This document shows positions 7,037 through 21,407 of a stretch of 64,000 bases of DNA, in pieces. The stretch is from the sequence record LT960552.1; one strand, written 5' to 3'. The position numbers were made by a program, and so were the translations under genes. Under the pieces are notes generated by a model, which was given only the letters and a program-made list of their open reading frames with translations, had not been told where the DNA came from and made no database searches. Positions within the stretch are counted from its first letter, which is position 1, and every line of letters begins with the position of its first letter.

Positions 7037-7042
7037 AAATAC

Positions 7043-7156: not shown

Positions 7157-7177
7157 CAAAAATTAAAAAGGTATTAT

Positions 7178-7552: not shown

Positions 7553-7553
7553 T

Positions 7554-7856: not shown

Positions 7857-7865
7857 AAGTAATTT

Positions 7866-7991: not shown

Positions 7992-8146
7992 CAAAATTGG
8001 TAAAAAAGCTCTGCGGTGGGACATTATATTCATCCACATGTTATTAGTTATTTTAAACAATCTGGTGAATATTTCAATGAATTGGATAAAACCGAACCAA
8101 GTAAATCAGATGTTAGTGGTGAACCAACAATAACTGGAAAATAAAA

Positions 8147-8509: not shown

Positions 8510-8869
8510 ATGAAAGTTTACGTAGATGATATTCGTAATCCAGCTAACCATCTCAGTACTGAACAGGCTGAAGGTATTATTTGGATTAAAGAGTGGTGGG
8601 AAGCACGTAACTTCATTTTGAAGAATGGATTAGATATTGAAGTATTGCACTTTGATAATTTTTTAGGTGATCCAAATCGTCGAACTGGTGGTGATATTCT
8701 AAGTTCAGTAATGTATCGTTTAAAACGTGGTAAATTTCCTAATTTGAAACAAATTTATTTACATAGTTCAGATAAAGAAGTAATTGATAAATTATATGAT
8801 TCATTTATTGAACATTGTAATGAATATGGAATTGAGTTAATAAAAAATTCACGTCCAAATCGTAGTTAA
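8510..8869 (+). CDS. cREC-like domain protein, tandem paralog
   Basis: KVYVDDIR..W..LHFDNFLG..GGDI; obvious paralog of upstream ORF. Confidence 0.7.
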   Translation: MKVYVDDIRNPANHLSTEQAEGIIWIKEWWEARNFILKNGLDIEVLHFDNFLGDPNRRTGGDILSSVMYRLKRGKFPNLKQIYLHSSDKEVIDKLYDSFIEHCNEYGIELIKNSRPNRS

Positions 8870-8875
8870 ACAAAT

Positions 8876-8996
8876 GGCGAGTTAGCTCAGTGGTAGAGCA
8901 CGTAGAAACCAAGGATTCTAGTACTAGATTCCCGCAGCAACAATAACTCATACTATGATAAAGTCGTGGTCGGGGGTTCAAATCCCTCACTCGCCG
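8876..8996 (+). ncRNA. CAGCA-module element 3: tRNA body with anticodon arm replaced by module
   Basis: GGCGAGT/ACTCGCC acceptor, canonical D and T arms; insert GGATTCTAG..CTAGATTCC-CGCAGCAA. Confidence 0.85.
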
Positions 8997-9061
8997 CAAA
9001 TAAATATCATTTTTCGAACCAACTGTGATAAATAAAAATAAATCATAGAGGGTTCGAAAAA

Positions 9062-9694
9062 ATGAAACAATGTTTAAATTGTAATAATGAAATTGATGAT
9101 AAGAAAAAGTTTTGCAATAGTTCGTGTGCTGCAAAGTACAATAATTCTCACAGGATATTATCGGAAGAAACAAAATCTAAAATTTCTAAATCTTTAAAAG
9201 GTCGAGAAGTTAAATTTATTGAAACTGAAAATGTTAAGTCTGGAAGACTTCGAGCGGGTGCTAAACGGAGAGAGGCAGCATTGGAACAATTGATGAAACG
9301 TGATTTTAATGATTTAAGTTTGGTAAGAAAAAAGAAACGTGTTAGAATAGAGCAAGAAAATAAATGTTTCAGGTGTGGATTGAATGAATGGATGAATGAA
9401 CCATTAATATTAGAAGTTGATCATATAGATGGTGATAATACTAATAATATAAGAGAAAATTTACGTGCATTATGTCCAAATTGTCACTCACAAACTGACA
9501 CATGGAGAGGTACGAATTCACGAAAAGTAAAAATTTCTGATGATGATTTAGTATCTATATTAAAAGAATCTAAATCCATACGAGATGCAATTTTAAAGGC
9601 TGGTATGTCAATTACCAGTCATAGTTATAAAAGAATAAACTTATTAATTGAGAAATATCATATTAATTTTTTACTAAGGGTAAAGGAGGTATAA
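9062..9694 (+). CDS. HNH homing endonuclease
   Basis: LEVDHIDGDNTNN..NLRALCPNCH; N-terminal CxxC/FCxxxC and NUMOD3-like HILSEETKSKIS. Confidence 0.9.
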   Translation: MKQCLNCNNEIDDKKKFCNSSCAAKYNNSHRILSEETKSKISKSLKGREVKFIETENVKSGRLRAGAKRREAALEQLMKRDFNDLSLVRKKKRVRIEQENKCFRCGLNEWMNEPLILEVDHIDGDNTNNIRENLRALCPNCHSQTDTWRGTNSRKVKISDDDLVSILKESKSIRDAILKAGMSITSHSYKRINLLIEKYHINFLLRVKEV

Positions 9695-9696
9695 TT

Positions 9697-9903
9697 ATGT
9701 TCCTTGATGAAATTAAACACGTTCCGTTTCCTAGTTATAAATCATTAGAAAAGGCACGTACTGAATCATCTAAATCAATTAATCCAACAACATATGATCG
9801 TTATAAAAAATATCATTATCCAGTAGGTACTGAATTTCGTTTAGCAAAAGCTATTGATTCTTTAATTGTTAAAATTAAAAAGGTAATTAAATATGTCAGT
9901 TAA
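9697..9903 (+). CDS. hypothetical protein
   Basis: GGAGG SD. Confidence 0.65.
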   Translation: MFLDEIKHVPFPSYKSLEKARTESSKSINPTTYDRYKKYHYPVGTEFRLAKAIDSLIVKIKKVIKYVS

Positions 9904-10498
9904 ATTTACTCCAGTAGTAACGTCGTTAACAAATACACTTGTTGTTGAATTAGAATACGAACATGGTGATGCAGATGCAACTACATATGACTATGCATCA
10001 ATCTCAGTACTTCCTGAACAGAAACAAACTATTGGGGGATTGCTTTCAATTATTGAGCATGGTTTAGAATGCCAGAATGCCGAACGATATGATGACACTA
10101 TTGATCCATTTTTTGTTGATGAAACAGTAACCTATGACAATGACCAAGGTATTCCATTAGTTGGAGTTGAAATTCGTTTTGGTTTTGATTATAATGCTCC
10201 GAAAGAGAAAGGAACTGTAATTGAAGTTGATAATGACCAGCAATATATTATTGTTCGTTCAGCAACGGGTGAAGTACACCAATTAGAATTTGATGAACTT
10301 GAAGATTGTATTACTTCATCGATTGGTATTATGGTAATGGATGGTAGTGAAATCAGCTTTACATATAATGGTATTAGTGTTAACATTGGTAGTGTTGGTG
10401 ATTGCACAGTTGACCAGCAATATAATGCATCAGGTGGTATTAACGCAGTTTATTACTATGATGAAAATGGTATTAAATACATTGTAACTGATTATTAA
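9893..10498 (+). CDS. hypothetical protein (EHGD motif)
   Basis: ORF track. Confidence 0.7.
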   Translation: MSVKFTPVVTSLTNTLVVELEYEHGDADATTYDYASISVLPEQKQTIGGLLSIIEHGLECQNAERYDDTIDPFFVDETVTYDNDQGIPLVGVEIRFGFDYNAPKEKGTVIEVDNDQQYIIVRSATGEVHQLEFDELEDCITSSIGIMVMDGSEISFTYNGISVNIGSVGDCTVDQQYNASGGINAVYYYDENGIKYIVTDY

Positions 10499-10704
10499 AA
10501 TTTGCGGGAACGCTTGACAAACTGCCAAACACCCCGTTAACATAGGGGGTTGTTTATGAAGTACTTTTATGAAGTATTAATTGTATTAGTAATTTTGGTT
10601 GGTCTTATTGCTTTCTGGTTAAAAAGTTTATTAATTTCAATACTAGGAATATTAATATTCTTAGTTGGATGTTTAATTGAATACGTTGTTAATAGGATAA
10701 AAAC

Positions 10705-11064
10705 ATGAAACATTTTCTTGAAGTATTATTTGTTGCTATTGCAGTAGTTGCTATGATGTTAGGTTATACAGTAATTTCAATTTGGTCAGCAATGTTTGCT
10801 ATTATCTTTTGGGCTGCTCCTAATTCATCAGTTAAAAAAACTCCCGAAGATTATCTTAATGAATCTCGTAAATTAAACGTATCAGGAGCAGAGGTTGAGT
10901 TTGAATTTTTATCGGATAAAGGTAAAACTTTTACAGTTAAATTAGAACCTCATTTGTATATTAATGATGATATGCTTATGGATAGTTTGGTAGAATATAT
11001 CGTTAAACACACTGGAATTCAAACCAGTTCTGAACGTTTAAATATCATTTCTATAAAAAAATAA
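10705..11064 (+). CDS. membrane-anchored hypothetical protein
   Basis: N-terminal hydrophobic segment. Confidence 0.65.
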   Translation: MKHFLEVLFVAIAVVAMMLGYTVISIWSAMFAIIFWAAPNSSVKKTPEDYLNESRKLNVSGAEVEFEFLSDKGKTFTVKLEPHLYINDDMLMDSLVEYIVKHTGIQTSSERLNIISIKK

Positions 11065-11070
11065 TTATTA

Positions 11071-11094
11071 AAAACCCTTTTTTAAGGGTTTTTT
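11071..11094 (+). terminator. intrinsic terminator
   Basis: AAAACCCTT-TTTT-AAGGGTTTT followed by T run. Confidence 0.6.
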
Positions 11095-11098
11095 AATT

Positions 11099-11184
11099 GG
11101 GGATATGGTGTAATGGTAGACGCAGGGGATTCAAAATCCCCCGCCCTTAGTGGCGTGTCAGTTCGAGTCTGACTATCCCCACCA
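11099..11184 (+). tRNA. tRNA-Leu(CAA)
   Basis: GGGGA-TTCAAAA-TCCCC, long variable arm, encoded CCA. Confidence 0.95.
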
Positions 11185-11304
11185 AATATTTTAATTAAAC
11201 TCATTTTTGTACTTGACATAAATCAAGAAATGTCTTACAATGTGTATATGTTCAGTAATGAACTAAACCGTTGTTAAACTATAAATTACCTTTTGGGTGA
11301 AAAA

Positions 11305-12918
11305 ATGAAAAAAACTTTATTAGCGTTATCTATTGTAGTAGCATCAATGACTGCATTTAACGCAACCGCAGCAGTCTCTTTAAAATCATCAGGCGACCAA
11401 TTTGGTCCGGCTATGTCTGATTTACTGAATTCAAATGAAAACGGTAACTGGAATCAGCAACGATTCATGAACACGTTCAATAATCGCTTTAATGGTACTG
11501 AAGCAGAAGCATTAGCATTGTTTAATGCTGTAAAAGGTGGTAATGTTCCAACATCACTTGATAGCTTTAATAGTACTTTACCATCTTCAGGTGGCACTGT
11601 CACTAAAGGTGATAAGGGCGACAAAGGTGACAAAGGCGAAAATGGTGCAGATGGTGCAGATGGTGCAGATGGTGCAGATGGTACAAAAGTATCATTAACT
11701 CCAGATGGTACTATTACATTGGATGATGGTAAAGGTGGAACCGTTCAACAAGATTTGGCTACACAAGCTGAATTAAATCAAGAACGTTATAAACTTGAAC
11801 AAAAAGATAAAGAACACGATGTTACTCTTACTGATCATGAAACTCGTTTAGATACAGTCGAAAATATGACGAATGGTTTAAATGTCGTTGTAGGGACTAA
11901 TAAACAAGATATCGAAGAATTAAAAGACGGTAAAGCAGACAAAAAAGATCTGGATAAAGAAGTTGCAGATCGTGATGCTGGTGATAAAGTACTAGATTCT
12001 AAAATTGATAATGTAGTATCAAATCAATCAAGTACTGATGCTGCACAAAATGCCGCCATTGATAGTAAAGTAGATAAAACTACACAAGCAGCGAAAGATT
12101 CAGCTCAAGATACTGCTATTGGTAATAAAGTTGACAAAAGTCAATATAATACTGATAAAGTAATTCAGGGTATTCATGATGCTGCACAAGACAATGCAAT
12201 TATCGGACTGGCAGTAACAAAAGCAGACAAAAAAGATCTGGATAAAGAAGTAGCTGACCGTAAAACCGCAGATAATAAATTGCAATCAAATATTGACAAT
12301 GAAGCAAATGTGCGTAATAATGCAGATGTTGCATTGAAAAACAATATTGATAAAAATAAAGCTGACCAACTTGGTGTTGATACTGCACAAAATGCCGTTA
12401 TTGATACTAAAGCAAGTAAGCAAGATTTAAACACTGAAGTTGATGAACGTAAAGTAGCTGATAAAAAGTTGCAGAAAAACATTGACAATGAAGCAAATGT
12501 ACGTAATAATGCAGACCAAGTTCTTAGTTCTCGCATTGATACAAATAGTACTACTTTAGTACAACACGACCAACGTATTACAAGTAACACACAACGTGTT
12601 GGTGTAGTTGAAAATCGTGTAACTAATTTAGAACAAAGTACTAATCGTCGGTTTACAGAATTAAAAAGTACTGTAGATGATAACCGTAAAGTTGCAAGTG
12701 CTGGTATTGCTGGTGCAGGTGCAATGGCAAATATTCCACAAGTATCGCAAAATAGTACTTTCTCTGTCGGTGCTGGTATTGGTGGTTATGATAGTGAGCA
12801 AGCAGTTGCTGTAGGATTCTCTGCTCGTATTAACAACAACATTGTAACTAAGGTTGCTGTAAGTACAAATACACAATCCGAGTTGTTATGGGGTGCTGGT
12901 GTAGGCGTAGAATGGTAA
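11305..12918 (+). CDS. YadA-like trimeric autotransporter adhesin with collagen-like repeat
   Basis: Signal peptide, (GDK)3/(GAD)4 Gly-X-Y repeat, coiled-coil stalk repeats, C-terminal anchor AGIAGAGAMANIPQ..GAGVGVEW. Confidence 0.9.
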   Translation: MKKTLLALSIVVASMTAFNATAAVSLKSSGDQFGPAMSDLLNSNENGNWNQQRFMNTFNNRFNGTEAEALALFNAVKGGNVPTSLDSFNSTLPSSGGTVTKGDKGDKGDKGENGADGADGADGADGTKVSLTPDGTITLDDGKGGTVQQDLATQAELNQERYKLEQKDKEHDVTLTDHETRLDTVENMTNGLNVVVGTNKQDIEELKDGKADKKDLDKEVADRDAGDKVLDSKIDNVVSNQSSTDAAQNAAIDSKVDKTTQAAKDSAQDTAIGNKVDKSQYNTDKVIQGIHDAAQDNAIIGLAVTKADKKDLDKEVADRKTADNKLQSNIDNEANVRNNADVALKNNIDKNKADQLGVDTAQNAVIDTKASKQDLNTEVDERKVADKKLQKNIDNEANVRNNADQVLSSRIDTNSTTLVQHDQRITSNTQRVGVVENRVTNLEQSTNRRFTELKSTVDDNRKVASAGIAGAGAMANIPQVSQNSTFSVGAGIGGYDSEQAVAVGFSARINNNIVTKVAVSTNTQSELLWGAGVGVEW

Positions 12919-12983
12919 TTGGTTGAATACGTTAGGGGTACACTGTACCCCTAAAATTTTAAGTTAGATAGCAGGAGAATTCA

Positions 12984-13493
12984 ATGTATACAGAAGAATA
13001 TTGTGAAAACAATTTGATAAACATTGGAAAAGGTGCTTCCCGAACAGTTTTTGCAATAAATCTTGATTATGTAGTTAAAGTTGCACATAATAAATTTGGT
13101 ATAGACCAAAATATTCAAGAGATAAAATTGTTTCAAAAATATGGAAAGATATTACCTCTTTGTAAAATAGATCTTTACCATAGTAATGAAAACTATATAA
13201 TAATGGAACGTATTAATACTTTTAATGTAGAGTATAATGCATTTGATATCACCCAAATAGATATGATATCACATTTGGTTTGTGTTGAACAAATTGATAA
13301 TGATTATATTAGCACATTACCTCCAGTACTGGCAGAATTTGCAAATAATTTACTCAGTAATGAATTAAGTAATGACGAAATTAGAAATGTATTGTATGAT
13401 GTTGTACATTATAATGTTGGTATAAAAGATGGTAAGATATTAATTCTTGATTATGGATTTACTGAAGAATTAGATTCTGAATATTGGGAATAA
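12984..13493 (+). CDS. minimal protein-kinase-like protein
   Basis: IGKGASRTVF Gly loop, VVKV lysine, DVVHYN catalytic loop, LDYG. Confidence 0.7.
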   Translation: MYTEEYCENNLINIGKGASRTVFAINLDYVVKVAHNKFGIDQNIQEIKLFQKYGKILPLCKIDLYHSNENYIIMERINTFNVEYNAFDITQIDMISHLVCVEQIDNDYISTLPPVLAEFANNLLSNELSNDEIRNVLYDVVHYNVGIKDGKILILDYGFTEELDSEYWE

Positions 13494-13615
13494 AAAATAG
13501 CTTGACATGATGATTTGAATTTGATATAATGTATATCACATCGACGGATGATAAACGTAACTCTGGTACTTATGATTAAGTACTTTTTTGAAAATAAAAT
13601 ATAAGGGCTTTATAA

Positions 13616-13840
13616 ATGGCTAAGAACACAATTACTGATATTGGCGAAGTTGAACGTACTGTGAATTATATCAAGTTCCAGATCTCTCAAGCTGACGAGC
13701 AGCTTGCACCATTCGCTAACAGCGATAAGCCAAAGATTTGCTATGCACATCTGTTGGAGTGGAAAAAGCAGTTGCAATCTGAACTGTATGAAATCCGTCA
13801 GGCTCAGCAGAAAGCACGTCATAACAATCCACACAAGTAA
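13616..13840 (+). CDS. hypothetical protein
   Basis: ORF downstream of TTGACA-N17-TATAAT (13502-13530). Confidence 0.7.
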   Translation: MAKNTITDIGEVERTVNYIKFQISQADEQLAPFANSDKPKICYAHLLEWKKQLQSELYEIRQAQQKARHNNPHK

Positions 13841-13900
13841 TAAGCCATGCCGCCAGCATTGTTGGCGGCGTCTTTTAAGTGATAACAAGAGTATATTATA

Positions 13901-14143
13901 ATGAAAAGTGCAACAGCGTTAAAAAATATGAATCAGCGTATTCAAACATTACGTTCTCAACTGGATTTAGCTTGGTCAGATTGGAGTAAGTTAAATAGTA
14001 TTGAGACTAAAACCAAAGATGAATCAAAAGATCTATCTAAAATTTCAGGTTTTATTAGTAAATTAAATTATGAAATTCGCGGTTTGGAATTGTCTTTTAA
14101 TGAATTGAAAAAACAAGTCATTGATGAAATCATTTTGTCTTAA
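13901..14143 (+). CDS. coiled-coil hypothetical protein
   Basis: ORF track. Confidence 0.6.
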   Translation: MKSATALKNMNQRIQTLRSQLDLAWSDWSKLNSIETKTKDESKDLSKISGFISKLNYEIRGLELSFNELKKQVIDEIILS

Positions 14144-14149
14144 TAAAAA

Positions 14150-14620
14150 ATGGGGTTAGTTATGGGTGTGATAGTTATTTACTGTATATTAGGTTCCCTT
14201 GGTTTATTCACATTGTATATGTTTGTAGTAACATCTGCAATGGGGACAGAACGACTTAAAACTTCTCAGTACTTTATGTCTTCATTGAGTTATTGTGAAG
14301 AAGCAACAACTAAAATTAATTTGTTGATTGATAAGTATGAAGCAGGGCTTATTAAAGCAAAATTAAAAAATAATGTAATTGAATTTACTGAAATGGAAAA
14401 AAATATTCCAGCAGGTGAAATCTGGATAGCAAATAAATATTTTTCATATGGTCAGTTACATCGTTATGGTGCGAATGGAAATATCTCTTGGCAATGTAAT
14501 AAACCAAGTTTAAAAACTTTTAAACGAATTATTAAACTTGAAAAACAGCTAAACGTTGCTCATCAAGAACCAGTACCGAAAAGTGCAAAATCAACAGATG
14601 AGCCTGTAATTTTGGACTAA
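14150..14620 (+). CDS. membrane-anchored hypothetical protein
   Basis: N-terminal TM segment. Confidence 0.65.
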   Translation: MGLVMGVIVIYCILGSLGLFTLYMFVVTSAMGTERLKTSQYFMSSLSYCEEATTKINLLIDKYEAGLIKAKLKNNVIEFTEMEKNIPAGEIWIANKYFSYGQLHRYGANGNISWQCNKPSLKTFKRIIKLEKQLNVAHQEPVPKSAKSTDEPVILD

Positions 14621-14724
14621 GGGCGTAATTGCCCTATTTTAATTAAGAGATTTAAAATATACATTTGAGAACTTCATGGTATGGGAAAAGTAGTGAATTT
14701 CTTTCAAATGTTATCGTAAATATT

Positions 14725-14753
14725 TGAAACAACTAAAAAAATTGTGGTATAAT
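14725..14753 (+). promoter_or_regulatory. TGAAAC-N17-TATAAT promoter upstream of module element 4
   Basis: TGAAAC 14725-14730, TATAAT 14748-14753. Confidence 0.8.
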
Positions 14754-14760
14754 ATAGTAC

Positions 14761-14886
14761 ATAAGGCAACGGAATCTTACAGCAAAAATACTAATTTTGA
14801 TGAAAACGAAACGACGAGGTTCGAATCCTCACCCACGAATTGCCTTATTATTAGTGGGAGCATGGTGCTGGATAAACAAAGATTCC
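14761..14886 (+). ncRNA. CAGCA-module element 4: minimal permuted tRNA-like cargo
   Basis: GGAATCT-TACAGCAA ... GAGG-TTCGAAT-CCTC, CCCAC/GTGGG closed acceptor, short D-like hairpin ... AGATTCC. Confidence 0.8.
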
Positions 14887-14907
14887 AAAATTTAAGTTAG
14901 AAAAATA

Positions 14908-14936
14908 TGAAACAAATCAAAAATTTGTGGTATAAT
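14908..14936 (+). promoter_or_regulatory. TGAAAC-N17-TATAAT promoter
   Basis: TGAAAC 14908-14913, TATAAT 14931-14936. Confidence 0.8.
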
Positions 14937-14945
14937 ATAAGAAGT

Positions 14946-15056
14946 AAAGCGGGATGGTGATTGATGAAAGCTGTTATTTGATTCTAGACAATCATAATAA
15001 GCGAGTAATAGAACAGGGTTCTTAATATCACATGGGTTCAAATCCCTGTCGCTGCA
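14946..15056 (+). pseudogene. degenerate class II (Ser-like) tRNA-like RNA with elongated anticodon arm
   Basis: T-loop TTCAAAT, weak acceptor AGCG/CGCT, long stem TTATTTGATT/AATCATAATAA with 6-nt loop CTAGAC. Confidence 0.5.
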
Positions 15057-15057
15057 C

Positions 15058-15188
15058 AAAAGCAACAAATGAAATCTTACAGCAAACACAACATTTTTTC
15101 CTTGCATAGAAAAACGGTGGGGTTCGATTCCCCAACATCCAAGTTGCTTTTTAGGATGTGTCTGGACGACCGTATGACACAGATTTCA
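15058..15188 (+). ncRNA. CAGCA-module element 5: minimal permuted tRNA-like cargo with TGC loop hairpin
   Basis: TGAAATCT-TACAGCAA ... TGGGG-TTCGATT-CCCCA, ACATCC/GGATGT closed acceptor ... AGATTTCA. Confidence 0.8.
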
Positions 15189-15193
15189 GTACT

Positions 15194-15268
15194 GTTCCGT
15201 TAGACAAATTGGTATAGTCACCACACTTTCAATGTGGATTTCTGAGGGTTCAAGTCCCTCACGGAACG
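15194..15268 (+). tRNA. tRNA-Glu(TTC)
   Basis: CCACA-CTTTCAA-TGTGG; GTTCCGT/ACGGAAC. Confidence 0.93.
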
Positions 15269-15272
15269 CTAA

Positions 15273-15387
15273 AGGATTCGTACAGCAACAATAAACTCTT
15301 AAAATTCAATTGGTGAAAACAACCTTGCAGTTCGATTCTGCTTCCACAATGCGTGGATCTGGTGGTGGATAGAAAAAACCGAATCCT
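15273..15387 (+). ncRNA. CAGCA-module element 6: minimal permuted tRNA-like cargo
   Basis: AGGATTCG-TACAGCAA ... GCAG-TTCGATT-CTGC, TCCAC/GTGGA ... CGAATCCT. Confidence 0.8.
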
Positions 15388-15416
15388 GATTTTAATTAAG
15401 AAGTACTAAAGAATTT

Positions 15417-15578
15417 GATACACACGGATTTATACAGCAAACATAATCCTAAAATAAAACATACGATAATGTTATTAACTCGGAATTCGTTCCTTTCGTT
15501 AGTACTTGGCAACTTGGGTACTTAAATAAGTTGTATCACCTCATGTGTATCGGATTAGTGGTGATTATAAATAAATCC
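15417..15578 (+). ncRNA. CAGCA-module element 7: multi-hairpin cargo
   Basis: GGATTTAT-ACAGCAA ... ATAAATCC; internal hairpins CAACTT/AAGTTG and ATCACC/GGTGAT. Confidence 0.7.
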
Positions 15579-15614
15579 AGTAAATCAAAAGTACCTTTAT
15601 CGGTACTTTTTTAT

Positions 15615-15707
15615 GGAAGATTGGCAGAGTTTGGTTTATTGCACAGGTCTTGAGTACCTGCGGGGGTTAATAGCCCTCCGTGAGTTCGAATCTCACATCT
15701 TCCTCCA
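15615..15707 (+). tRNA. tRNA-Ser(TGA), loop CTTGAGT
   Basis: CAGGT-CTTGAGT-ACCTG, long variable arm, encoded CCA. Confidence 0.9.
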
Positions 15708-15726
15708 AATTTTATGTAGTACAATG

Positions 15727-15800
15727 GGGTACGTAGCTCAGTCTGGTAGAGCAGCCATGCGAAAACGGTGTGTCGGTGGTTCGAATCCACTCGCTCCCCA
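15727..15800 (+). pseudogene. degenerate tRNA (Phe-like, loop GCGAAAA, poorly paired anticodon stem)
   Basis: Canonical D and T arms; mismatched acceptor and anticodon stems. Confidence 0.55.
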
Positions 15801-15804
15801 CTAA

Positions 15805-15861
15805 GGAATCTAGCAGCAACCATAACCCAATCAAACTTTTAATTTGACAATTATGGATTCC
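15805..15861 (+). ncRNA. CAGCA-module element 8: isolated Lys(TTT) anticodon stem-loop cargo
   Basis: GGAATC-TAGCAGCAA-CCATAA..TCAAA-CTTTTAA-TTTGA..TTATGG-ATTCC. Confidence 0.85.
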
Positions 15862-15884
15862 AGTTATTTTAAGTTGAGAATAGC

Positions 15885-16289
15885 ATGACGGATAACGAAA
15901 AACTTGAAAATATATTAATTGAAGCATTGACAATAATTAATACTTCAACATATAATTTTGAATCGTCCAAAGACGATTCAAAATCTAGATTTGTCTTATG
16001 CGGTAAAAGAGCACAACTTAAGTTGTACTTTTCTGCCAAATATGGTGAATTAAGTATAGAATTTATTCATCACTTGATTGGAGATACCCTATCATTTCAG
16101 ATTAATTATTATGATGATTCGGACGAAGATGATGATTACCATAATTTATATGGTGAAATACGTATTCCAAGAACTGAAGAACAATACTTTCAGTACTACA
16201 CAATTCAAGATCATGTTTTCTCTTTAGAGTTTTATAAATTATTAGAAAACATAATGAACGAATTATTGGTAAAGTGGCAGAGCGGCTGA
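15885..16289 (+). CDS. hypothetical protein, EEQHFQ-motif family
   Basis: TEEQYFQ motif; 3' end overlaps tRNA-Ser. Confidence 0.7.
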   Translation: MTDNEKLENILIEALTIINTSTYNFESSKDDSKSRFVLCGKRAQLKLYFSAKYGELSIEFIHHLIGDTLSFQINYYDDSDEDDDYHNLYGEIRIPRTEEQYFQYYTIQDHVFSLEFYKLLENIMNELLVKWQSG

Positions 16290-16358
16290 ATGCAACCGCT
16301 TGGAAAGCGGTCAGGTTAGGTGATACTAGCCTCGTAGGTTCAAATCCTATCTTTACCG
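16268..16358 (+). tRNA. tRNA-Ser(GGA)
   Basis: ACCGC-TTGGAAA-GCGGT, long variable arm, G73. Confidence 0.93.
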
Positions 16359-16408
16359 CAAAAGTAATAACCTCCTTATTAAAGAATACATACCCATAGG
16401 AGAATATT

Positions 16409-16765
16409 ATGTACGAGAAAGATGATGGTCCATTAACAGATGAACAATTGTGTATTATTCGTGAAATGAATAGTCATTTAGAACAATCTAATTTAAGTAT
16501 AGACTTGGATTGGTTAAATAGTGAAAAACAAGGAAATGCAATGTATTACGACTACTATTACAAAATTGATGGTGAACTTCGTCGTCATACCAGTAATCAA
16601 GAGTTAACTGATGCGGAAATCAATAATATTTTTGGTGCAAGCAAACATGTGGTAATGCTTACTCCAATTGTTTTTGAACGTGAGATTAGTACGGAAGATA
16701 AGTCTGGTAATAAAATTAAAAGTACTGAAAAAGTACACGTAGGATTTTTAGGTTACGTGGAATAA
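16409..16765 (+). CDS. hypothetical protein
   Basis: GGGAG SD. Confidence 0.65.
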   Translation: MYEKDDGPLTDEQLCIIREMNSHLEQSNLSIDLDWLNSEKQGNAMYYDYYYKIDGELRRHTSNQELTDAEINNIFGASKHVVMLTPIVFEREISTEDKSGNKIKSTEKVHVGFLGYVE

Positions 16766-16810
16766 TATAATTTATTGGATTCGAAAGAATCCTTTTTAAG
16801 TGAGATGATT

Positions 16811-17035
16811 ATGGATAATCAACATAAAAAGATTAAAGGGTATCGTGACCTTTCTCAAAAAGAAATCGATGCAATGAATGAAATTAAACAACTAGCAGCT
16901 ACTGTTGAAGAGTTAATTGAAAAACTTGAAGGAACTGACTCTATTGATAAACGCTGGCTTGCTATTGCAAAAACAGATTTACAAAAAGGGTTCATGTCAG
17001 CAGTGCGAAGCGTGGCTAAACCAGATTCCTTTTGA
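16811..17035 (+). CDS. acb2: anti-CBASS cyclic-oligonucleotide sponge Acb2
   Basis: [17 protein letters not shown]-terminus and [23 protein letters not shown]-terminus match the Acb2 family. Confidence 0.9.
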
Positions 17036-17043
17036 GGAAAATA

Positions 17044-17424
17044 ATGCATACAATTGATAACCATGCTGATATAATTGATGATGTTATAACTGAAATACTT
17101 GAAATTTATACGTGTAAAGTTGAAGTTTATAATTATGGTAATTTGTTTTCACAGCACGGCTATAGTACTAAACATAATATAAATTATCATATAAATGCAA
17201 AGTACTATAATAATAATTCAAAAAATGGTAGACGAGCTAATAGTCTTGTGATAGAATTTAAATTCACTAACAGAGTTCCTAAAGGACTAAAAGATTATTA
17301 TAGATTATCAATACCTGAAATACAAAGTATTACAGAAGAACGACATTTTCAATTAATGTTAGTTACTGATGATATGTACTTGGATTATGAAGTTATAAAT
17401 AAATTACGTACACATATTATGTAA
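17044..17424 (+). CDS. hypothetical protein, EEQHFQ-motif family
   Basis: TEERHFQL motif. Confidence 0.7.
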   Translation: MHTIDNHADIIDDVITEILEIYTCKVEVYNYGNLFSQHGYSTKHNINYHINAKYYNNNSKNGRRANSLVIEFKFTNRVPKGLKDYYRLSIPEIQSITEERHFQLMLVTDDMYLDYEVINKLRTHIM

Positions 17425-17433
17425 AAAAGTTTT

Positions 17434-17487
17434 TAGAATCTAACAGCAATCAAAACTCATTGGATATATGAAAAAAAATAGATTCTA
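17434..17487 (+). ncRNA. CAGCA-module element 9: small hairpin cargo with GAT-centred 7-nt loop
   Basis: TAGAATCTA-ACAGCAA..TCAT-TGGATAT-ATGA..TAGATTCTA; 5 nt upstream of tRNA-Ile(GAT). Confidence 0.75.
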
Positions 17488-17492
17488 GTATT

Positions 17493-17564
17493 TGGGAATT
17501 ATCTCAGCGGTAGAGAGCACAACTGATAATTGTGAGGTCACTGGTTCAAATCCAGTATTCCCAA
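17493..17564 (+). tRNA. tRNA-Ile(GAT)
   Basis: CACAA-CTGATAA-TTGTG; TGGGAAT/ATTCCCA. Confidence 0.92.
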
Positions 17565-17663
17565 CTAAGTAGTTCAGTACTGAAATATGTACAGTGAAAT
17601 TATTCAACACTATAGGTAGAACTTTGAATGAATCAGTAAGCCTATAAGTAACTATATTAAATT

Positions 17664-17794
17664 TGGAATTCAACAGCAATCTTCACTTACTAAAAACAGC
17701 TACCTCACGGTTTGTAGGTTCGAGTCCTACCTTGTACTTTCGAGTACATGTGGTGAAATCGGTAAACACGGCTGTCCAAAAGAAATGAATTCCA
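17664..17794 (+). ncRNA. CAGCA-module element 10: circularly permuted Leu-type tRNA
   Basis: TGGAATTCA-ACAGCAA, 3' half (ACAGC, variable arm, GTAGG-TTCGAGT-CCTAC, TGTACT), TTCG, 5' half (AGTACA, TGGTGAAATCGGTAAACAC, GCTGT), TGAATTCCA. Confidence 0.9.
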
Positions 17795-17847
17795 GTATTA
17801 ATTAAGACATAAATATTCTTATACATTATTTTTGTAGGAATATAGAT

Positions 17848-18447
17848 ATGGAAATGAAAAAGTTGATGGAAGAGATATCTTCCATAATGGAAGGACAATT
17901 ACCAGGATATTATTATCACGGTAGCTCTAGACCAATATCAAATTTCAGTGATGAGTTTGTGGGTAGAGGTAATGATGAATATGGTCCAGGTATATATTTT
18001 AGTTCTGCACCAAATACTTCAATAGGTTATGCAAAAGATGGTGGTTCTAATGGAATGGTATATCAATGCGAACTGAATTTAAGAAAAGAACTATCTAAAA
18101 AAACTAAAATTAATAAAGCAGTACTATTTAAATTAATACAAAATACACCTGATGAAGATGCTTATACTAACTGGAATGAAAATAAAAATGTTGCTTATAG
18201 AACAGCATTACAGGGTTACATCGATGAAGGAAATATGTACGATGCATTAATGGGTGTTTGGTACGATTGGTATCGGGAGTATCCTGTTCAATTCGTAAGA
18301 TCATTAGTACAATTAGGATATGACGGATACATATATACTTTTGGAAGCGGTGAACGTTTTATAATAGTATATAATCCAGCAAGTATTAAAGTTATAAACA
18401 CTTTCAATCCAGAAGAAGCTAAGCAGAAACTACTTGGAAGTGATTAA
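17848..18447 (+). CDS. ADP-ribosyltransferase-like protein
   Basis: YYHGS and YGPGIYFSS motifs typical of H-Y-type ART folds; inference. Confidence 0.6.
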   Translation: MEMKKLMEEISSIMEGQLPGYYYHGSSRPISNFSDEFVGRGNDEYGPGIYFSSAPNTSIGYAKDGGSNGMVYQCELNLRKELSKKTKINKAVLFKLIQNTPDEDAYTNWNENKNVAYRTALQGYIDEGNMYDALMGVWYDWYREYPVQFVRSLVQLGYDGYIYTFGSGERFIIVYNPASIKVINTFNPEEAKQKLLGSD

Positions 18448-18453
18448 AAAATT

Positions 18454-18573
18454 TGGAATTCAACAGCAAATCATTCAAAACACGTAGCATGTCGTAGGTT
18501 CAAGTCCTACCAGTACTTAATTGTACTGTAGCTCAGTCGGGAGAGCAGCCACCTTAAAAAGAAATGAATTCCA
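18454..18573 (+). ncRNA. CAGCA-module element 11: circularly permuted Val-type tRNA
   Basis: TGGAATTCA-ACAGCAA, 3' half (ACAC-GTAGC, GTAGG-TTCAAGT-CCTAC, CAGTAC), TTAATT, 5' half (GTACTG, TAGCTCAGTCGGGAGAGC, GCCAC-CTT), TGAATTCCA. Confidence 0.9.
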
Positions 18574-18730
18574 GTATTAATTACAAAGAGAACCAATAAT
18601 GTACACTAATATTTTTGATATATTAAAAGATTTAACAGTGTTTGGAAAAGTAACATATCCAGTAAAATAAAATAATTAGGTTATTTCGAAGTTCTAAAAC
18701 AACGAAACATTTACTAACGTAAAAAGAATT

Positions 18731-18789
18731 TGGAATCTATCAGCAACCATAACCCAATCAAACATTTAATTTGACAATTATGGATTCCA
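18731..18789 (+). ncRNA. CAGCA-module element 12: Lys-type anticodon stem-loop cargo with variant loop CATTTAA
   Basis: Near-identical copy of element 8; loop differs at position 33. Confidence 0.85.
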
Positions 18790-18811
18790 GCCTATTTTTT
18801 GGAGTACAAAA

Positions 18812-19078
18812 ATGTATTATGCTCGGTTAGAACATCCTGATAATGGATATGAAATTGAAAGAATACATCTTAAAACCTTAGATTGTGAAAAGTACTATCC
18901 AGTATATTCAATTAATATTGGAAGTTGGAGTACCAGTGTATATCTTAGAGATGATGAGTATGAATATAATAGTGTAAACTTTGAGTTCTACATCAAAAAT
19001 GGAGATGAATATATTCTCGAAGATATTTTCTCAGACCCTGATTTAAATCCGTACTTGATAGAAGACGATGAAGAATAA
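18812..19078 (+). CDS. hypothetical protein
   Basis: GGAG SD. Confidence 0.65.
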   Translation: MYYARLEHPDNGYEIERIHLKTLDCEKYYPVYSINIGSWSTSVYLRDDEYEYNSVNFEFYIKNGDEYILEDIFSDPDLNPYLIEDDEE

Positions 19079-19092
19079 ATATCACAAATAAA

Positions 19093-19121
19093 TGAAACGA
19101 TTAAAAAATTTGTGGTATAAT
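19093..19121 (+). promoter_or_regulatory. TGAAAC-N17-TATAAT promoter upstream of tRNA-Asn
   Basis: TGAAAC 19093-19098, TATAAT 19116-19121. Confidence 0.8.
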
Positions 19122-19144
19122 ATAAGTAAGAAAAACAACAAGAT

Positions 19145-19217
19145 GGTTACGTAGCTCAGTGGTTAGAGCGTTCGCCTGTTAAGCGAGTGGTCGCTGGTTC
19201 AAATCCAGCCGTGATCG
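19145..19217 (+). tRNA. tRNA-Asn(GTT)
   Basis: TTCGC-CTGTTAA-GCGAG, G73. Confidence 0.93.
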
Positions 19218-19265
19218 CAAATTGATGTTTGGTATGGTTTAAAAATATAATAACCAAACATTATA

Positions 19266-19308
19266 AAGAATCTTTCAGCATTAACACGGTGAAAATATAT
19301 AGATTCTT
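19266..19308 (+). ncRNA. CAGCA-module element 13: minimal module
   Basis: AAGAATCT-TTCAGCAT..GTGAAAA..AGATTCTT. Confidence 0.65.
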
Positions 19309-19312
19309 GATT

Positions 19313-19389
19313 AGGAGATTAGCATAGATGGCCTAATGCACCGGTCTTTGAAATCGGTATCGGTGGTTCGAATCCACCATCTCCTGCCA
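19313..19389 (+). tRNA. tRNA-Gln(TTG)
   Basis: CCGGT-CTTTGAA-ATCGG; AGGAGAT/ATCTCCT-G-CCA. Confidence 0.92.
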
Positions 19390-19408
19390 ATTTAAGTAGA
19401 ATAATAGT

Positions 19409-19831
19409 ATGAAGTTATGTAAGAGATGTAATCAGAATAAGCCATTAGAAGCTTTTTCAAAAAATAAATCCAAAAAAGACGGATTACAAGTGAGTTGTAA
19501 GGAATGTTTTAAAACAATAAACAACAATTCATATAAAAATGAATCTGGTGAACGTCGAAGAAAAGTTGGCGAGACTCGTGATAGAATTAAAGCTATTAAT
19601 AGATCGATTATATCAGAACATCGATCAGTAAATCCATGTCACTTTTGTGGAGAAACCGAACATTGTTGTTTAGACTTTCATCACTTAGACCCTACTGTCA
19701 AAGATAAAGAAATATCTGTGTTGGTACATTATAGTACTGCTAGATTGGTAAAGGAAATAGCTAAATGTATAGTTATTTGCTCAAATTGTCACCGGAAACA
19801 CCATGCTGGTATTGAAGGTTACGAATTATAA
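19409..19831 (+). CDS. HNH endonuclease
   Basis: CKRC..CKEC N-terminus; CHFC..LDFHHLDP..KCIVICSNCHRKHH. Confidence 0.85.
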   Translation: MKLCKRCNQNKPLEAFSKNKSKKDGLQVSCKECFKTINNNSYKNESGERRRKVGETRDRIKAINRSIISEHRSVNPCHFCGETEHCCLDFHHLDPTVKDKEISVLVHYSTARLVKEIAKCIVICSNCHRKHHAGIEGYEL

Positions 19832-19839
19832 AGTTTTCA

Positions 19840-19966
19840 TTTCCTTGGTGAAAACAAGCTGGCATGATTCCCCCTGCTTGTAAAATTATCGAACGGGAAC
19901 CGCGTAGCACCGGTACAGGTCAGATTGTAAAGATCAAGTATGTACAGTACTGAGAGCGGCAGTACA
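19840..19966 (+). ncRNA. structured intergenic region, candidate ncRNA
   Basis: CTTG-GTGAAAA-CAAG, TTCCC/GGGAA, GTACTG/CAGTAC hairpins. Confidence 0.4.
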
Positions 19967-19972
19967 AAAAAT

Positions 19973-20054
19973 GCGGGATTAGCTCAGTGGTAGAGCACTT
20001 GCCTTCCAAGCAAGAGGCGAATAGGTTCCATCGGTTCGAATCCGATATTCCGCT
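19973..20054 (+). tRNA. tRNA-Gly(TCC) with enlarged variable region
   Basis: CTTGC-CTTCCAA-GCAAG, U73, 15-nt variable region. Confidence 0.85.
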
Positions 20055-20173
20055 CAAATTAAACAAACAATAAGGTAAATCCTATGATGCTATAGAAAAA
20101 CAGTACTGGTCCTCCTGATAACTTTAATTCAGAACAAAACACTAAATTAAATATTATCCAAAAGGAACATACT

Positions 20174-20500
20174 ATGTTAAACAAAGAAAAATATATTACT
20201 GTAAAAAATACTTGGAAATTAGAAAAAGAGCATAACATTTTCGACCATGTGGTTTATAATGTTATTCGTGGCCTACCATCAGATAATGGGTTTGCACCAA
20301 TTACTGATAAAGGAAAACTTCAAGCAAATAATAACGACCCGTATAATATGTACAACTATGCAGTTCTTGAATTGCATTATGAGTTGAATGAAAAACGATA
20401 CAATTATGAAAAAACAGTACAACATTATTCTAAACTATTTGGCATTGAATTTACACCTGAACTTATCGAAGTAGTACTTACTTTGATTAAAGTTAAATAA
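20174..20500 (+). CDS. hypothetical protein
   Basis: AAGGA SD. Confidence 0.7.
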   Translation: MLNKEKYITVKNTWKLEKEHNIFDHVVYNVIRGLPSDNGFAPITDKGKLQANNNDPYNMYNYAVLELHYELNEKRYNYEKTVQHYSKLFGIEFTPELIEVVLTLIKVK

Positions 20501-20508
20501 CAGAATTA

Positions 20509-20572
20509 AAGAATCCAACAGCACCCATAAATGAAATCAACTGTTAATTGAAAAATTCAAAAATGGATTCTT
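20509..20572 (+). ncRNA. CAGCA-module element 14: isolated Asn(GTT) anticodon stem-loop cargo
   Basis: AAGAATCC-AACAGCAC..TGAA..TCAA-CTGTTAA-TTGA..TTCA..GGATTCTT. Confidence 0.85.
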
Positions 20573-20646
20573 GTTTTTATTTGGAAGTCTCATGAAAGAT
20601 AATTTTTATGAAGATTTAAGATTTAGATATATTGAAGTACATGAAT

Positions 20647-20676
20647 TTGACGTTATAGCACTGAACGTGCTATAAT
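20647..20676 (+). promoter_or_regulatory. sigma70-like promoter with internal 9-bp inverted repeat
   Basis: TTGACG-N17-TATAAT; TTATAGCAC-N5-GTGCTATAA. Confidence 0.7.
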
Positions 20677-20680
20677 AGCT

Positions 20681-20754
20681 GGAGCCGTAGTTCAGTTGGT
20701 TAGAACGCTTGCCTGTCACGCAAGAGGCCGTGGGTTCAAGTCCCATCGGTTCCG
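20681..20754 (+). tRNA. tRNA-Asp(GTC)
   Basis: CTTGC-CTGTCAC-GCAAG, G73. Confidence 0.95.
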
Positions 20755-20771
20755 CAAAAATAAGGAAAATT

Positions 20772-21035
20772 ATGAACAAGAAAGCAAAAACACGTATTTT
20801 TAATACTGTTATAGAAACGTCACCAGACCATTGTAAATACAATTTTTGGTATCATAATATGCTTAGAAAAACAATTTTACTTATGTCTAAGGGTAAGTAT
20901 CGTAAAACTGAAAAAGAAATTATACAAATACTTACTCGAAATCATGGTAAAAAACGATATAATCCTACACCAGAAGAACATGATGAAATGGTTCGTTTAG
21001 AACAAAGTGTTGGTCTAATGTGTGGTGTTAAATAA
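20772..21035 (+). CDS. hypothetical basic protein
   Basis: AAGGA SD before ATG. Confidence 0.65.
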   Translation: MNKKAKTRIFNTVIETSPDHCKYNFWYHNMLRKTILLMSKGKYRKTEKEIIQILTRNHGKKRYNPTPEEHDEMVRLEQSVGLMCGVK

Positions 21036-21038
21036 ATT

Positions 21039-21390
21039 GGTAATAAAGAGTGTAAGGGTTAGTACTTAGTATCATATTCCCCCTCTACCTTCTTCCCCCA
21101 TTATTTGGGTTCTAGTCGTAGACACAATGTAGTACTTTATTACCCGCGAATTAATATTTTATTGTGGGGTGGTAAGAGTAAGATACCGATTCAAACAAGG
21201 GTCAGAAAGATCCACTTAACCCGTTTTGAAACAATAAAATATCCCGAAAGGGTGACGATGTGAATAGTGCATATCCTTGTAGTATGGGACAGTACTACAT
21301 TTTTATAAATAAATTGGAATAGAGCATGAGACTGCCCTCACTATTCGACGCTTTAAGTAGCTTTCTAGAGAGTACTTTCGGGTACTCACC
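21039..21390 (+). ncRNA. large structured non-coding region (one or two RNAs), unknown family
   Basis: 10-bp, 12-bp and 8-bp long-range stems, GAAA and TTCG tetraloop hairpins, no ORF. Confidence 0.7.
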
Positions 21391-21407
21391 CAAATAAAAT
21401 AAAACAT

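Follow-up and report, generated by a model that had tools for sequence, protein, structure and literature searches.

A family of handle-bearing RNA modules in a jumbo phage tRNA array, with candidate mimics of the anticodon stem-loop

We report here that the tRNA array of Yersinia phage fHe-Yen9-03 (record LT960552.1; 352,596 bp), an Eneladusvirus and Rak2-like jumbo myovirus, contains 14 copies of an RNA module (E1 to E14), all on the tRNA strand, in which one conserved handle is combined with different tRNA parts. On comparative grounds we conclude firmly that these modules represent a new phage-specific RNA family. Three of them, E8, E12 and E14, and less clearly a fourth, E9, consist of the handle and a hairpin that resembles an anticodon stem-loop. 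We tentatively interpret these as non-decoding tRNA mimics or decoys, the best supported of the readings considered, but one for which we would claim plausibility rather than probability. The stretch analysed (the window) is the terminal 64 kb of the genome, and a window coordinate equals the record coordinate minus 288,596. Its first 32 kb is a tRNA array with 23 tRNA calls by ARAGORN and 27 by Rfam, all on the plus strand and interspersed with small open reading frames (ORFs). E1 to E14 are not annotated as such in GenBank, where three over-long genes are entered as tRNA-Pseudo or tRNA-Undet. Structural claims throughout are comparative or made in silico.

Results

A shared handle defines the family

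The handle has three parts. A helix, P1, of 7-9 base pairs (bp) with the core GAAUC/GAUUC is accompanied by a bulge in its 5′ strand, in which CAGCA(A), without exception across the 62 distinct handles, comes after three variable bases, and by an A-rich linker on the 5′ side of the P1 3′ strand, often with GAAA. In free modules AGUA very often follows the P1 3′ strand, and this motif is also found in the loop that closes the inserted form of the handle described below. The 5′ motif GRWWTYNNNCAGCA gave 22 matches with at most one mismatch against 4.5 ± 2.2 expected, a number reached by none of 100 shuffles; 13 of the 22 are true modules, a CGGCA variant brings the total to 14, and every true module has a complementary P1 3′ strand. 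P1 also covaries across the 62 handles. Its inner five pairs were imposed by the search, but the next two outwards were not, and these are paired in 100% and 74% of cases, the first as GC (43), AU (18) or GU (1) and the second as AU (21), UA (21) or GC (4). The variants seen include GGAAUC/GAUUCC, AGAAUC/GAUUCU, GGAUUC/GAAUCC, GGAUUU/AAAUCC, GGAAUUC/GAAUUCC and GGAAUGC/GCAUUCC. Because many members are orthologues, member counts here and below exceed the number of independent events.

The same modules occur in the same order in Serratia phage BF, Pectobacterium phage CBB and Cronobacter phage GAP32. They come in three architectures, with the handle inserted in a tRNA gene (E1-E3), placed round a tRNA body (E4-E7, E10 and E11), or placed round a hairpin or almost nothing (E8, E9, E12, E13 and E14), the second being a circular permutation of the first. 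A cmscan search of Rfam 15, at gathering thresholds over the window and at E-values up to 5 over 6900-21000, returned only tRNAs and a partial YrlA match, and we found no description of the module in the literature on decoys, permuted tRNAs, phage tRNA introns or tRNA-like RNAs. Nothing resembling the tRNA mimics skipping-rope, DUF2693-FD or salivarius-1 appeared in the Rfam scan of 6900-21000, the presence of each in the library not having been checked. Two identities considered for the bulge were set aside. It lacks the G-A pairs required of a K-turn; and AAC-AGC-AAN fits the A-R-N triplets bound by the distal face of Hfq, but the conserved C positions exceed what that motif needs, so that a link to Hfq would be speculation.

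Hairpin modules carry the anticodon loops of tRNA-Lys and tRNA-Asn

E8 can be read as GGAATC-TAG-CAGCAA-CCATAA-CCCAA-TCAAA-CTTTTAA-TTTGA-CAA-TTATG-GATTCC-AG. A first-pass annotation made from the sequence alone had likened its hairpin loop to that of tRNA-Lys, and the loop is indeed identical at all 7 positions to the anticodon loop of the phage tRNA-Lys(UUU) (GTTGA-CTTTTAA-TCAAT), with a different stem; CUUUUAA on 5 bp has the 7-nucleotide (nt) loop, Y32, U33 and R37 expected of an anticodon stem-loop. E12 is the near-identical duplicate that the same annotation described, with two differences only: the bulge has TAT for TAG, and the loop CATTTAA for CTTTTAA. The accompanying idea that E12 is a cleavage-resistant version was not supported; it relies on a single one of these two changes, in a duplicate that is very recent and confined to fHe-Yen9-03. 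The minimum free energy (MFE) folds of E8 and E12 consist of P1 and the 5-bp/7-nt hairpin (z = -1.2 and -1.7, respectively), and the E8 copy in phage BF is identical.

We aligned 10 distinct Lys-type members (E8, E12, the GAP32 and CBB copies, four from other jumbo contigs, and L011/L108), drawn from Eneladus-, Mimas- and other Rak2-like contigs and from an unrelated lineage of ~128 kb represented by L011/L108. A hairpin of 5 bp and 7 nt is present in 10 of 10, with 100% pairing, compensatory change at four of the five pairs and an invariant loop-closing A-U pair. The P2 helix that adjoins P1 covaries as well (CCATAA/TTATGG, CCACA/TGTGG, TTATTTT/AAAATAA). The loop is CTTTTAA in E8, L011 and L108, CTTTTAC in GAP32, L089, L144 and L177, and CATTTAA in E12; U33-UUU-A37 was counted as kept in 8 of the 10, the E12 loop itself having A33. 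L011 and L108 combine CGAGA-CTTTTAA-TCTTG with another P1, GGAATGC/GCATTCC, and the Lys display thus recurs on a diverged handle in an unrelated lineage.

The loop of E14 is the exact Asn loop CTGTTAA that had been noticed at first pass: it equals the anticodon loop of the phage tRNA-Asn(GUU) (TTCGC-CTGTTAA-GCGAG) in 7 of 7 positions, again on a different stem, and CUGUUAA on 4 bp likewise has the 7-nt loop, Y32, U33 and R37. The hairpin lies within an 18-nt block, TCAACTGTTAATTGAAAA, that does not vary among 8 phages from at least two genera, in contrast to the flanking columns, and this argues for sequence-specific constraint but offers no covariation.

E9 was partly as first described. Its hairpin, with a 7-nt TGGATAT loop, is real, the 4-bp stem covarying between TCAT/ATGA and TTCT/AGAA in a 16-sequence alignment of its type, and its 3′ end lies 4 nt upstream of tRNA-Ile(GAU), which begins at 17493. 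The description 'Ile-like', however, is unsupported, because loops of this type are 7-9 nt long (TGGATAT, CGGATAT, TCGATTAT, TTGGATAAT, CGGCTTAT, TCGCTTAAT) and never have U33, and because the type lies upstream of tRNA-Gln or of ORFs in relatives. Some versions resemble a T-loop (UUCGAUU). A P2 pairing beside P1 was consistent on inspection with ~9 of 13 E9-type modules, which we found unconvincing. E13 is a near-empty handle, in whose relatives (L006, L161, L003, L004 and L177) a common AATAATATAT precedes the P1 3′ strand. None of E8, E9, E12, E13 and E14 was called by ARAGORN or by the Rfam tRNA model; they have only P1, sometimes P2, and one hairpin.

The handle is inserted in tRNA genes and wrapped round tRNA bodies

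E1-E3 are tRNA genes whose anticodon arm contains the handle, here closed by a short loop. When the insert was removed in silico, eight of eight joined sequences were called as tRNAs by ARAGORN, with canonical cloverleaves. Joined E1 is a tRNA(UCA) of opal-suppressor type in fHe-Yen9-03 and tRNA-Glu(UUC) in BF and CBB; joined E2 is tRNA-Tyr(GUA) in fHe-Yen9-03; and joined E3 is tRNA-Ile(GAU) in fHe-Yen9-03 and tRNA-Lys(UUU) in BF, CBB and GAP32, the ARAGORN cloverleaves from BF and CBB ending in CCA. The split anticodon stem covaries (ACA/TGT, AGC/GCT, ACT/AGT). No bulge-helix-bulge (two 3-nt bulges flanking a 4-bp helix) was seen by eye at the junctions of E1-E3 and their orthologues (for example ACG followed by TAGAAACC, and CTCAT followed by ACA), no dedicated search tool having been run. 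Nor do the inserts resemble group I tRNA introns, being 41-51 nt long, lying between nt 28 and 29 or 31 and 32, and giving no match to an Rfam intron. Several over-long phage 'pseudo-tRNAs' are thus canonical tRNA genes carrying a 41-51 nt element at these positions, which matters for annotation, and the occurrence of the same element in free and circularly permuted form raises the question of whether bacterial viruses splice or rearrange tRNAs.

A further odd tRNA-like gene lies at 15727-15799, directly upstream of E8. It has an 'anticodon' loop of ~10 nt (ATGCGAAAAC), scores 36 bits with the Rfam tRNA model and is not called by ARAGORN. Its CBB orthologue (L003, 13149-13267) also has a 10-nt loop and carries a handle insert between nt 28 and 29, which the fHe-Yen9-03 copy does not.

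The modules with tRNA bodies (E4-E7, E10 and E11) have an open P1. Its strands enclose a permuted body without an anticodon loop, consisting of a T arm, a loop-closed acceptor and a D arm, an arrangement that is found in the tRNA-like domain of YrlA and is absent from E8, E9, E12 and E14. The hairpin modules do, as had been suggested at first pass, complement family members that have tRNA bodies without anticodon loops. E11 matches the Rfam YrlA model RF02553 at 18487-18549 with 36.2 bits (model positions 24-84 of 114; E = 6.9e-5 over 14 kb), the gathering score being 69; the hairpin-only elements gave no RF02553 match in the Rfam scan. The pairs of the anticodon stem of E11 covary with CBB (GCCAC/GTAGC versus GCAGC/GCTGC), and E10 has orthologues in BF, CBB and GAP32. 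We also considered a tri-split tRNA, in which the hairpin modules would be the missing arm of the bodies, and rejected it: the bodies retain an anticodon stem of 4-5 bp of their own, for example in E11 and in CBB. Table 1 lists the modules together with the neighbouring genes considered at the end of this report.

Table 1. Modules of the family and neighbouring ORFs, in window coordinates
Feature	Position	Strand	Description	Basis
E1	7043-7157	+	tRNA gene with 41-nt handle insert at 7072-7112, between nt 28 and 29; tRNA-Pseudo in GenBank
E2	7866-7992	+	tRNA-Tyr(GUA)-type gene with 51-nt handle insert at 7898-7948, between nt 31 and 32
E3	8876-8997	+	tRNA gene with 49-nt handle insert at 8903-8951, between nt 28 and 29
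E4	14771-14886	+	handle-wrapped tRNA-like body; extended -10 promoter directly upstream
E5	15071-15189	+	handle-wrapped tRNA-like body
E6	15273-15387	+	handle-wrapped tRNA-like body
E7	15426-15578	+	handle-wrapped tRNA-like body
E8	15803-15863	+	handle and Lys(UUU)-type anticodon-like hairpin	sequence, MFE fold, 10-sequence alignment
E8 P1	15805-15810 / 15856-15861	+	GGAATC / GATTCC	sequence
E8 bulge	15811-15819	+	TAG-CAGCAA	sequence
E8 hairpin	15831-15835, 15836-15842, 15843-15847	+	TCAAA, loop CTTTTAA, TTTGA	sequence
E8 P2		+	CCATAA/TTATGG	sequence
E9	17433-17488	+	handle and 4-bp hairpin TCAT/ATGA, loop TGGATAT at 17461-17467
E10	17663-17795	+	handle round permuted tRNA-like body: T arm, acceptor closed by UUCG, D arm
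E11	18453-18574	+	handle round YrlA-like tRNA body
E12	18730-18790	+	near-duplicate of E8; stem 18758-18762/18770-18774, loop CATTTAA at 18763-18769
E13	19265-19309	+	near-empty handle (43 nt), 3 nt upstream of tRNA-Gln; z = -3.1
E14	20509-20573	+	handle and Asn(GUU)-type hairpin: TCAA 20537-20540, loop CTGTTAA 20541-20547, TTGA 20548-20551
HNH/NUMOD homing-endonuclease ORF	9062-9691	+	adjoins E3
Acb2/Tad1 hairpin domain ORF	16811-17032	+	74 amino acids; inside the tRNA/module array	PF24729, E = 8e-20
ART-PolyVal ADP-ribosyltransferase ORF	17848-18444	+	199 amino acids	PF18760, E = 1.6e-11
HNH/NUMOD homing-endonuclease ORF	19409-19828	+	adjoins E13/tRNA-Gln

Modules are confined to tRNA clusters and turn over rapidly

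Modules were also found in several IMG/VR contigs of 330-400 kb and, beyond the Rak2-like group, in unrelated contigs of ~30 to 390 kb (L011/L108, L052, L114, L021, L082/L156, L132, L153, L173, L176 and L098). Pattern scans of IMG/VR yield chance matches, which for the 18-base gapped pattern were roughly estimated to be about as many as the matches observed; we therefore filtered by context and retained only matches that lay within tRNA clusters and showed further features of the family. Every convincing IMG/VR copy lies within a tRNA cluster and on the tRNA strand. We also searched 596 Gb of cellular genomes, bacterial and archaeal, with GGAATCTAACAGCAAN{20,50}GATTCC, a pattern for one common form of the module; the only match had no tRNA in its vicinity and is most likely due to chance. 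Among the proteins common to the window and the unrelated module-bearing contigs, only HNH/NUMOD homing endonucleases recur (L132, L173 and L176).

Module slots switch type between near-identical genomes. The slot of E12 holds an Asn-type module in BF and an E9-type together with an Asn-type module in fHe-Yen9-04, and BF has E9-type modules at the E13 and E14 slots of fHe-Yen9-03. The anticodon displayed can also flip within one tRNA body, as between Lys and Ile in E3, Glu and UCA in E1, and Asp (CTGTCAC, L057) and Glu (CTTTCAC, L092). This apparently rapid turnover fits an arms race. The displayed set comprises Lys UUU, Asn GUU, Glu UUC, Asp GUC, Tyr GUA and Ile GAU. Anticodon nucleases target tRNAs for Lys (PrrC, PARIS), Asn (PARIS, colicin E5), and Tyr and Asp (colicin E5), a list that we take to overlap with the displayed set.

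Discussion

Cleavage of tRNA is a common anti-phage strategy, used by PrrC, RloC, PARIS and retron-linked nucleases and in the collateral activity of Cas13, and phages are known to answer it by repair (Pnkp, Rnl1) and with replacement tRNAs. Phage RNAs that present isolated parts of tRNA would, if the mimic interpretation is true, amount to a third answer, namely RNA mimicry or competition. Small phage RNAs acting in this way have a conceptual parallel in the RNA-based anti-CRISPRs (solitary repeat mimics), in which a small phage RNA mimics a host RNA and occupies a defence protein, although these mimic CRISPR repeats rather than tRNA and have no structural relation to the modules. Phage T4 also makes two small stable RNAs of unknown function, rnaC and rnaD (species 1 and 2), that are co-transcribed in its tRNA cluster; we rejected these as relatives, there being no P1/CAGCAA handle and no sequence similarity on inspection. 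The family would also account for part of the 'tRNA-Pseudo' and 'tRNA-Undet' entries, and of the space between genes, in tRNA arrays of large phages, Rak2-like and other.

Under the mimic interpretation, E8, E12 and E14 would probably be processed from the long tRNA/ORF transcripts of this virulent jumbo phage. The handle would close the ends of the RNA and present a hairpin of 4-5 bp and 7 nt, shaped like the anticodon stem-loop of tRNA-Lys(UUU) or tRNA-Asn(GUU), which would compete with host or phage tRNAs for proteins that read the anticodon loop. The first candidates for such targets would be the anticodon nucleases of defence systems, of PARIS AriB-like, PrrC/RloC-like or colicin-E5-like kinds. 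Having no tRNA body, the module RNA could not enter translation. Among the sister modules, E1-E3 would present a whole tRNA that the insert in the anticodon arm renders unusable, and E4-E7, E10 and E11 a tRNA body that lacks an anticodon loop and has a closed acceptor; CAGCAA may perhaps serve as a protein-binding or processing tag.

The position of PARIS in this scheme merits closer attention. That tRNA-Lys(UUU) is a target of PARIS, as the first-pass annotation stated, is borne out by the reported cleavage of both tRNA-Lys(UUU) and tRNA-Asn(GUU) by its AriB nuclease, which needs U36-A-A-U39 beside the cut site between positions 40 and 41; all AriB substrates share U36-A-A-U39, the resistant tRNA-Lys of phage T5 differs at positions 39 and 41, and competition by overexpressed viral tRNAs is raised by the authors as a possible additional effect (PMC12409363). 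E8, E12 and E14 keep UAAU and have UU or UG at 40/41, compared with the C/A or C/C of cleaved tRNAs, while L011/L108 have UAAUC/U. The combination of UAAU with a predicted non-cleavable 40/41 is suggestive, and no more than suggestive, of a link to AriB. The anti-PARIS tRNAs of T5 (tRNA-Lys/Thr/Asn; PMC11464382, PMC12409363) are like the modules in lying in a phage tRNA array, in involving the same species (Lys UUU, Asn GUU), in bearing changes at or near the nuclease cut site and in having competition proposed as a possible extra effect. They are, however, complete tRNAs that act as decoding replacements, in contrast to the bodyless and non-decoding E8, E12 and E14.

Several observations weigh against the mimic interpretation. 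An account specific to PARIS is incomplete, because the phage tRNA-Lys(UUU) keeps the AriB-cleavable UAAUC/A, and the GAP32-type loop CTTTTAC breaks UAAU. Comparison of the loops across related phages, which the first-pass annotation had proposed as a check, gave a divided answer: the Asn-type block is invariant in its eight phages, whereas the Lys-type loop is not fixed (CTTTTAC, CCTAACC, CTTATCT), and the versions in CBB (CCTAACC) and L161 (CTTATCT) are without the standard anticodon-loop signature. The loop of E9 has G33, and E9-type loops as a whole are not anticodon-like. The hairpin of E14 comprises only four A-U-rich pairs and is rivalled by an equally conserved alternative pairing, TTGA/TCAA; its MFE fold lacks the TCAA/TTGA hairpin and prefers an alternative TTGAA/TTCAA hairpin. 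With support from folding energy alone modest, the case for the hairpin elements rests on comparison across phages. E8, E12 and E14 have no convincing promoter or terminator of their own (promoter-like sites number 37 against 31 ± 6, which is not an enrichment), so that their existence as separate RNAs is an assumption. Moreover, a pure decoy model does not require an intron-like handle in real tRNA genes. Finally, because the handle is the most conserved part and occurs almost empty in E13, the core function may lie there, with the loops as leftovers of tRNA.

This last point is the basis of the main rival explanation, which we consider rather unlikely. In it the handle would be either punctuation for RNA processing and stability in the tRNA/ORF array, with the modules as folded spacers that guide RNases to their cut sites or shield the ends of adjacent tRNAs and mRNAs, or a tag for one protein, and the hairpins would be filler of tRNA ancestry. 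P1 and CAGCAA are the invariant parts across the 62 handles, near-empty handles exist in E13 and its relatives, payloads are highly diverse, AGUA recurs after P1 and in the closing loop of the inserted form, and modules abut tRNAs or lie 20-30 nt upstream of ORF starts with no promoters of their own. Filler should nevertheless drift, yet the Asn block is invariant and the Lys hairpin is strictly 5 bp and 7 nt with compensatory changes; and in E1-E3 a handle closed by a loop within the tRNA can be neither an end-protecting clamp nor punctuation between genes. The insertion of the handle in complete tRNA genes, which the first-pass annotation missed, opens further rival readings. One is a system of fragmented tRNAs, in which the handle would be a protein-dependent signal for intron removal or permutation, cut by a nuclease and sealed by phage RNA ligases, so that E1-E3 yield functional tRNAs and the free modules derive from the system by excision, permutation or degeneration. 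The restored cloverleaves (Glu/UCA, Tyr, Lys/Ile), the CCA encoded in E3 of BF and CBB, the covarying split stem and the presence or absence of the insert in the 15727-15799 gene and its CBB orthologue all fit this idea. So does the relation of inserted and free forms as circular permutations of one fold, which recalls the intron-containing, split and permuted tRNA genes of archaea and algae; the archaeal and red-algal genes likewise show one junction structure as an insert and at permuted termini, and use non-canonical positions in the anticodon arm, but here no bulge-helix-bulge was seen and the permuted members lack an anticodon loop. Such a system is attractive for E1-E3, but we judge it distinctly unlikely overall. 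To our knowledge no splicing endonuclease is known in these hosts or phages; the linkers between handle and exon vary (6-12 nt and 9-12 nt) and so provide no fixed ruler; the window also has Glu, Tyr, Lys and Ile tRNA genes with no insert; the body modules have no anticodon loop to restore and already possess an anticodon stem, so that the hairpin modules are not their missing piece; and E8, E12 and E14, although conserved, would have no role. Rak2-like phages do encode a T4-type Rnl1 and a second RNA ligase (PMC5259590), and 'enigmatic' tRNA introns have been reported for Lak megaphages (PMC6784885). The latter are, like the handles, unexplained inserts in tRNA genes of huge phages that are conserved between genomes, but they are larger (e.g. 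93 nt), are predicted at the canonical 37/38 position and have CAGCAA in none of the listed sequences, and we therefore rejected them as the same element.

A scaffold resembling the bacterial Y RNAs seems to us very unlikely. Here the handle would bind a Ro60/Rsr-like or other ring-shaped or RNA-binding protein, and the tRNA part would tether it, as in YrlA, to tRNA-handling enzymes or an exonuclease. The inner domain of E11 matches the tRNA-like domain of YrlA in the same order of T arm, closed acceptor and D arm, and YrlA (RF02553; PMC4201824), of which phage examples exist, shares with the modules a plan in which the paired 5′ and 3′ ends form a stem with a conserved single-stranded or bulged motif. 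TROVE proteins are, furthermore, encoded by some jumbo phages (PMC7824862). However, the stem part of YrlA is unmatched and the score, 36 bits, lies below the gathering score of 69; GNCGAAN0-1G, the site proposed for Rsr binding (PMC4201824), occurs in none of the 62 handles, all of which have GRAAUC-NNN-CAGCAA, an unrelated combination of helix and motif. No rsr/TROVE neighbour was found in a Pfam scan of 20 window ORFs, some 290 kb of the genome lying outside that scan, and none is mentioned for CBB (PMC5259590). Unlike YrlA, the modules occur in many copies per genome, some of them inside real tRNA genes and some with a hairpin in place of any tRNA-like body. We regard as highly improbable the suggestion that the modules are cis-acting leaders of downstream small ORFs or functionless remnants of decaying tRNA genes: E8, E12 and E14 do end 20-25 nt before an ATG codon, and slots turn over quickly between close relatives, but the same module types precede unrelated ORFs and tRNAs in relatives (the Asn type of GAP32 lies 62 nt upstream of tRNA-Asn), and conservation across genera together with covariation speaks against decay. 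A further reading, which we also consider unlikely, is that a dedicated protein of the phage (or host), acting on parts of tRNAs, recognises the handle as its tag. This might take the form of tRNA fragmentation and rejoining in a bacterial virus, where E1-E3 may be spliced and anticodon arms may be exchangeable at the level of RNA or DNA, or of a modular decoy platform, where one handle-binding factor may serve interchangeable baits (an anticodon hairpin, a tRNA body or a whole tRNA) and so trap a variety of defence enzymes directed at tRNA. Either form, if true, would constitute a new RNA-protein system in the conflict between phage and host.

Neighbouring genes, promoters and other features of the window

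The search for partner proteins covered 20 ORFs of the window, using Pfam. The product of the ORF at 16811-17032 is likely to be a cyclic-nucleotide sponge (anti-CBASS/anti-Thoeris), as predicted from its Acb2/Tad1 hairpin domain. The ART-PolyVal ORF lies exactly between the GGAATTC-type body modules E10 and E11, and an ORF of equal length occupies this position in BF, CBB and GAP32, for which position and length were compared, domains having been scanned in the window. The gene seems to be missing from fHe-Yen9-04 (L013), because the gap between E10 and E11 is only ~270 nt there. Counter-defence and selfish genes are thus interspersed in the array, which is compatible with an anti-defence role for the RNAs but is not proof of one.

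Strong extended -10 promoters lie upstream of E4, of a tRNA-like piece before E5, of tRNA-Asn and of tRNA-Asp. Extended -10 promoter-like sites (TG before a TATAAT -10) at ~14724-14753, ~14907-14936, ~19092-19121 and ~20647-20676 head sub-clusters of tRNAs and modules, and the first three have AAAAATT(T)GTGGTATAATATA in common. The tRNA-like piece, at 14940-15058 between a strong promoter and E5, has a T arm (GGGTTCAAATCCC) and an acceptor-like 3′ end, and contains GATTCTAG without a matching 5′ half of the handle. At 16777-16792 (+), a terminator-like hairpin, GGATTC-GAAA-GAATCC followed by a T run, is conserved in BF; the stem repeats the P1 sequence of E6, and the loop corresponds to the GAAA found in the handle linker.

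Other unusual tRNA genes include an amber-suppressor-type tRNA(CUA) at 1645-1720 and a tRNA at 30972-31043 (+) that scores 54.5 bits with Rfam and is not called by ARAGORN. In other phage lineages, an aberrant Lys-like loop, ATTTTA(C), is seen in tRNA-like genes of L114 (2467-2536), L021 (1127-1198, minus strand), L156 (3879-3949, minus strand) and L082 (1837-1907, minus strand), for which ARAGORN gives 'tRNA-??? (tt)'; the L021 copy is itself wrapped in a handle. Lastly, two conserved non-coding blocks at 19832-19972 and 21036-21405, upstream of an 83-nt tRNA-Gly and of tRNA-Arg, have no Rfam match and may represent additional structured RNAs; BF (L002, ~16068-16214) and CBB (L003, ~18548-18681) share the first of them.

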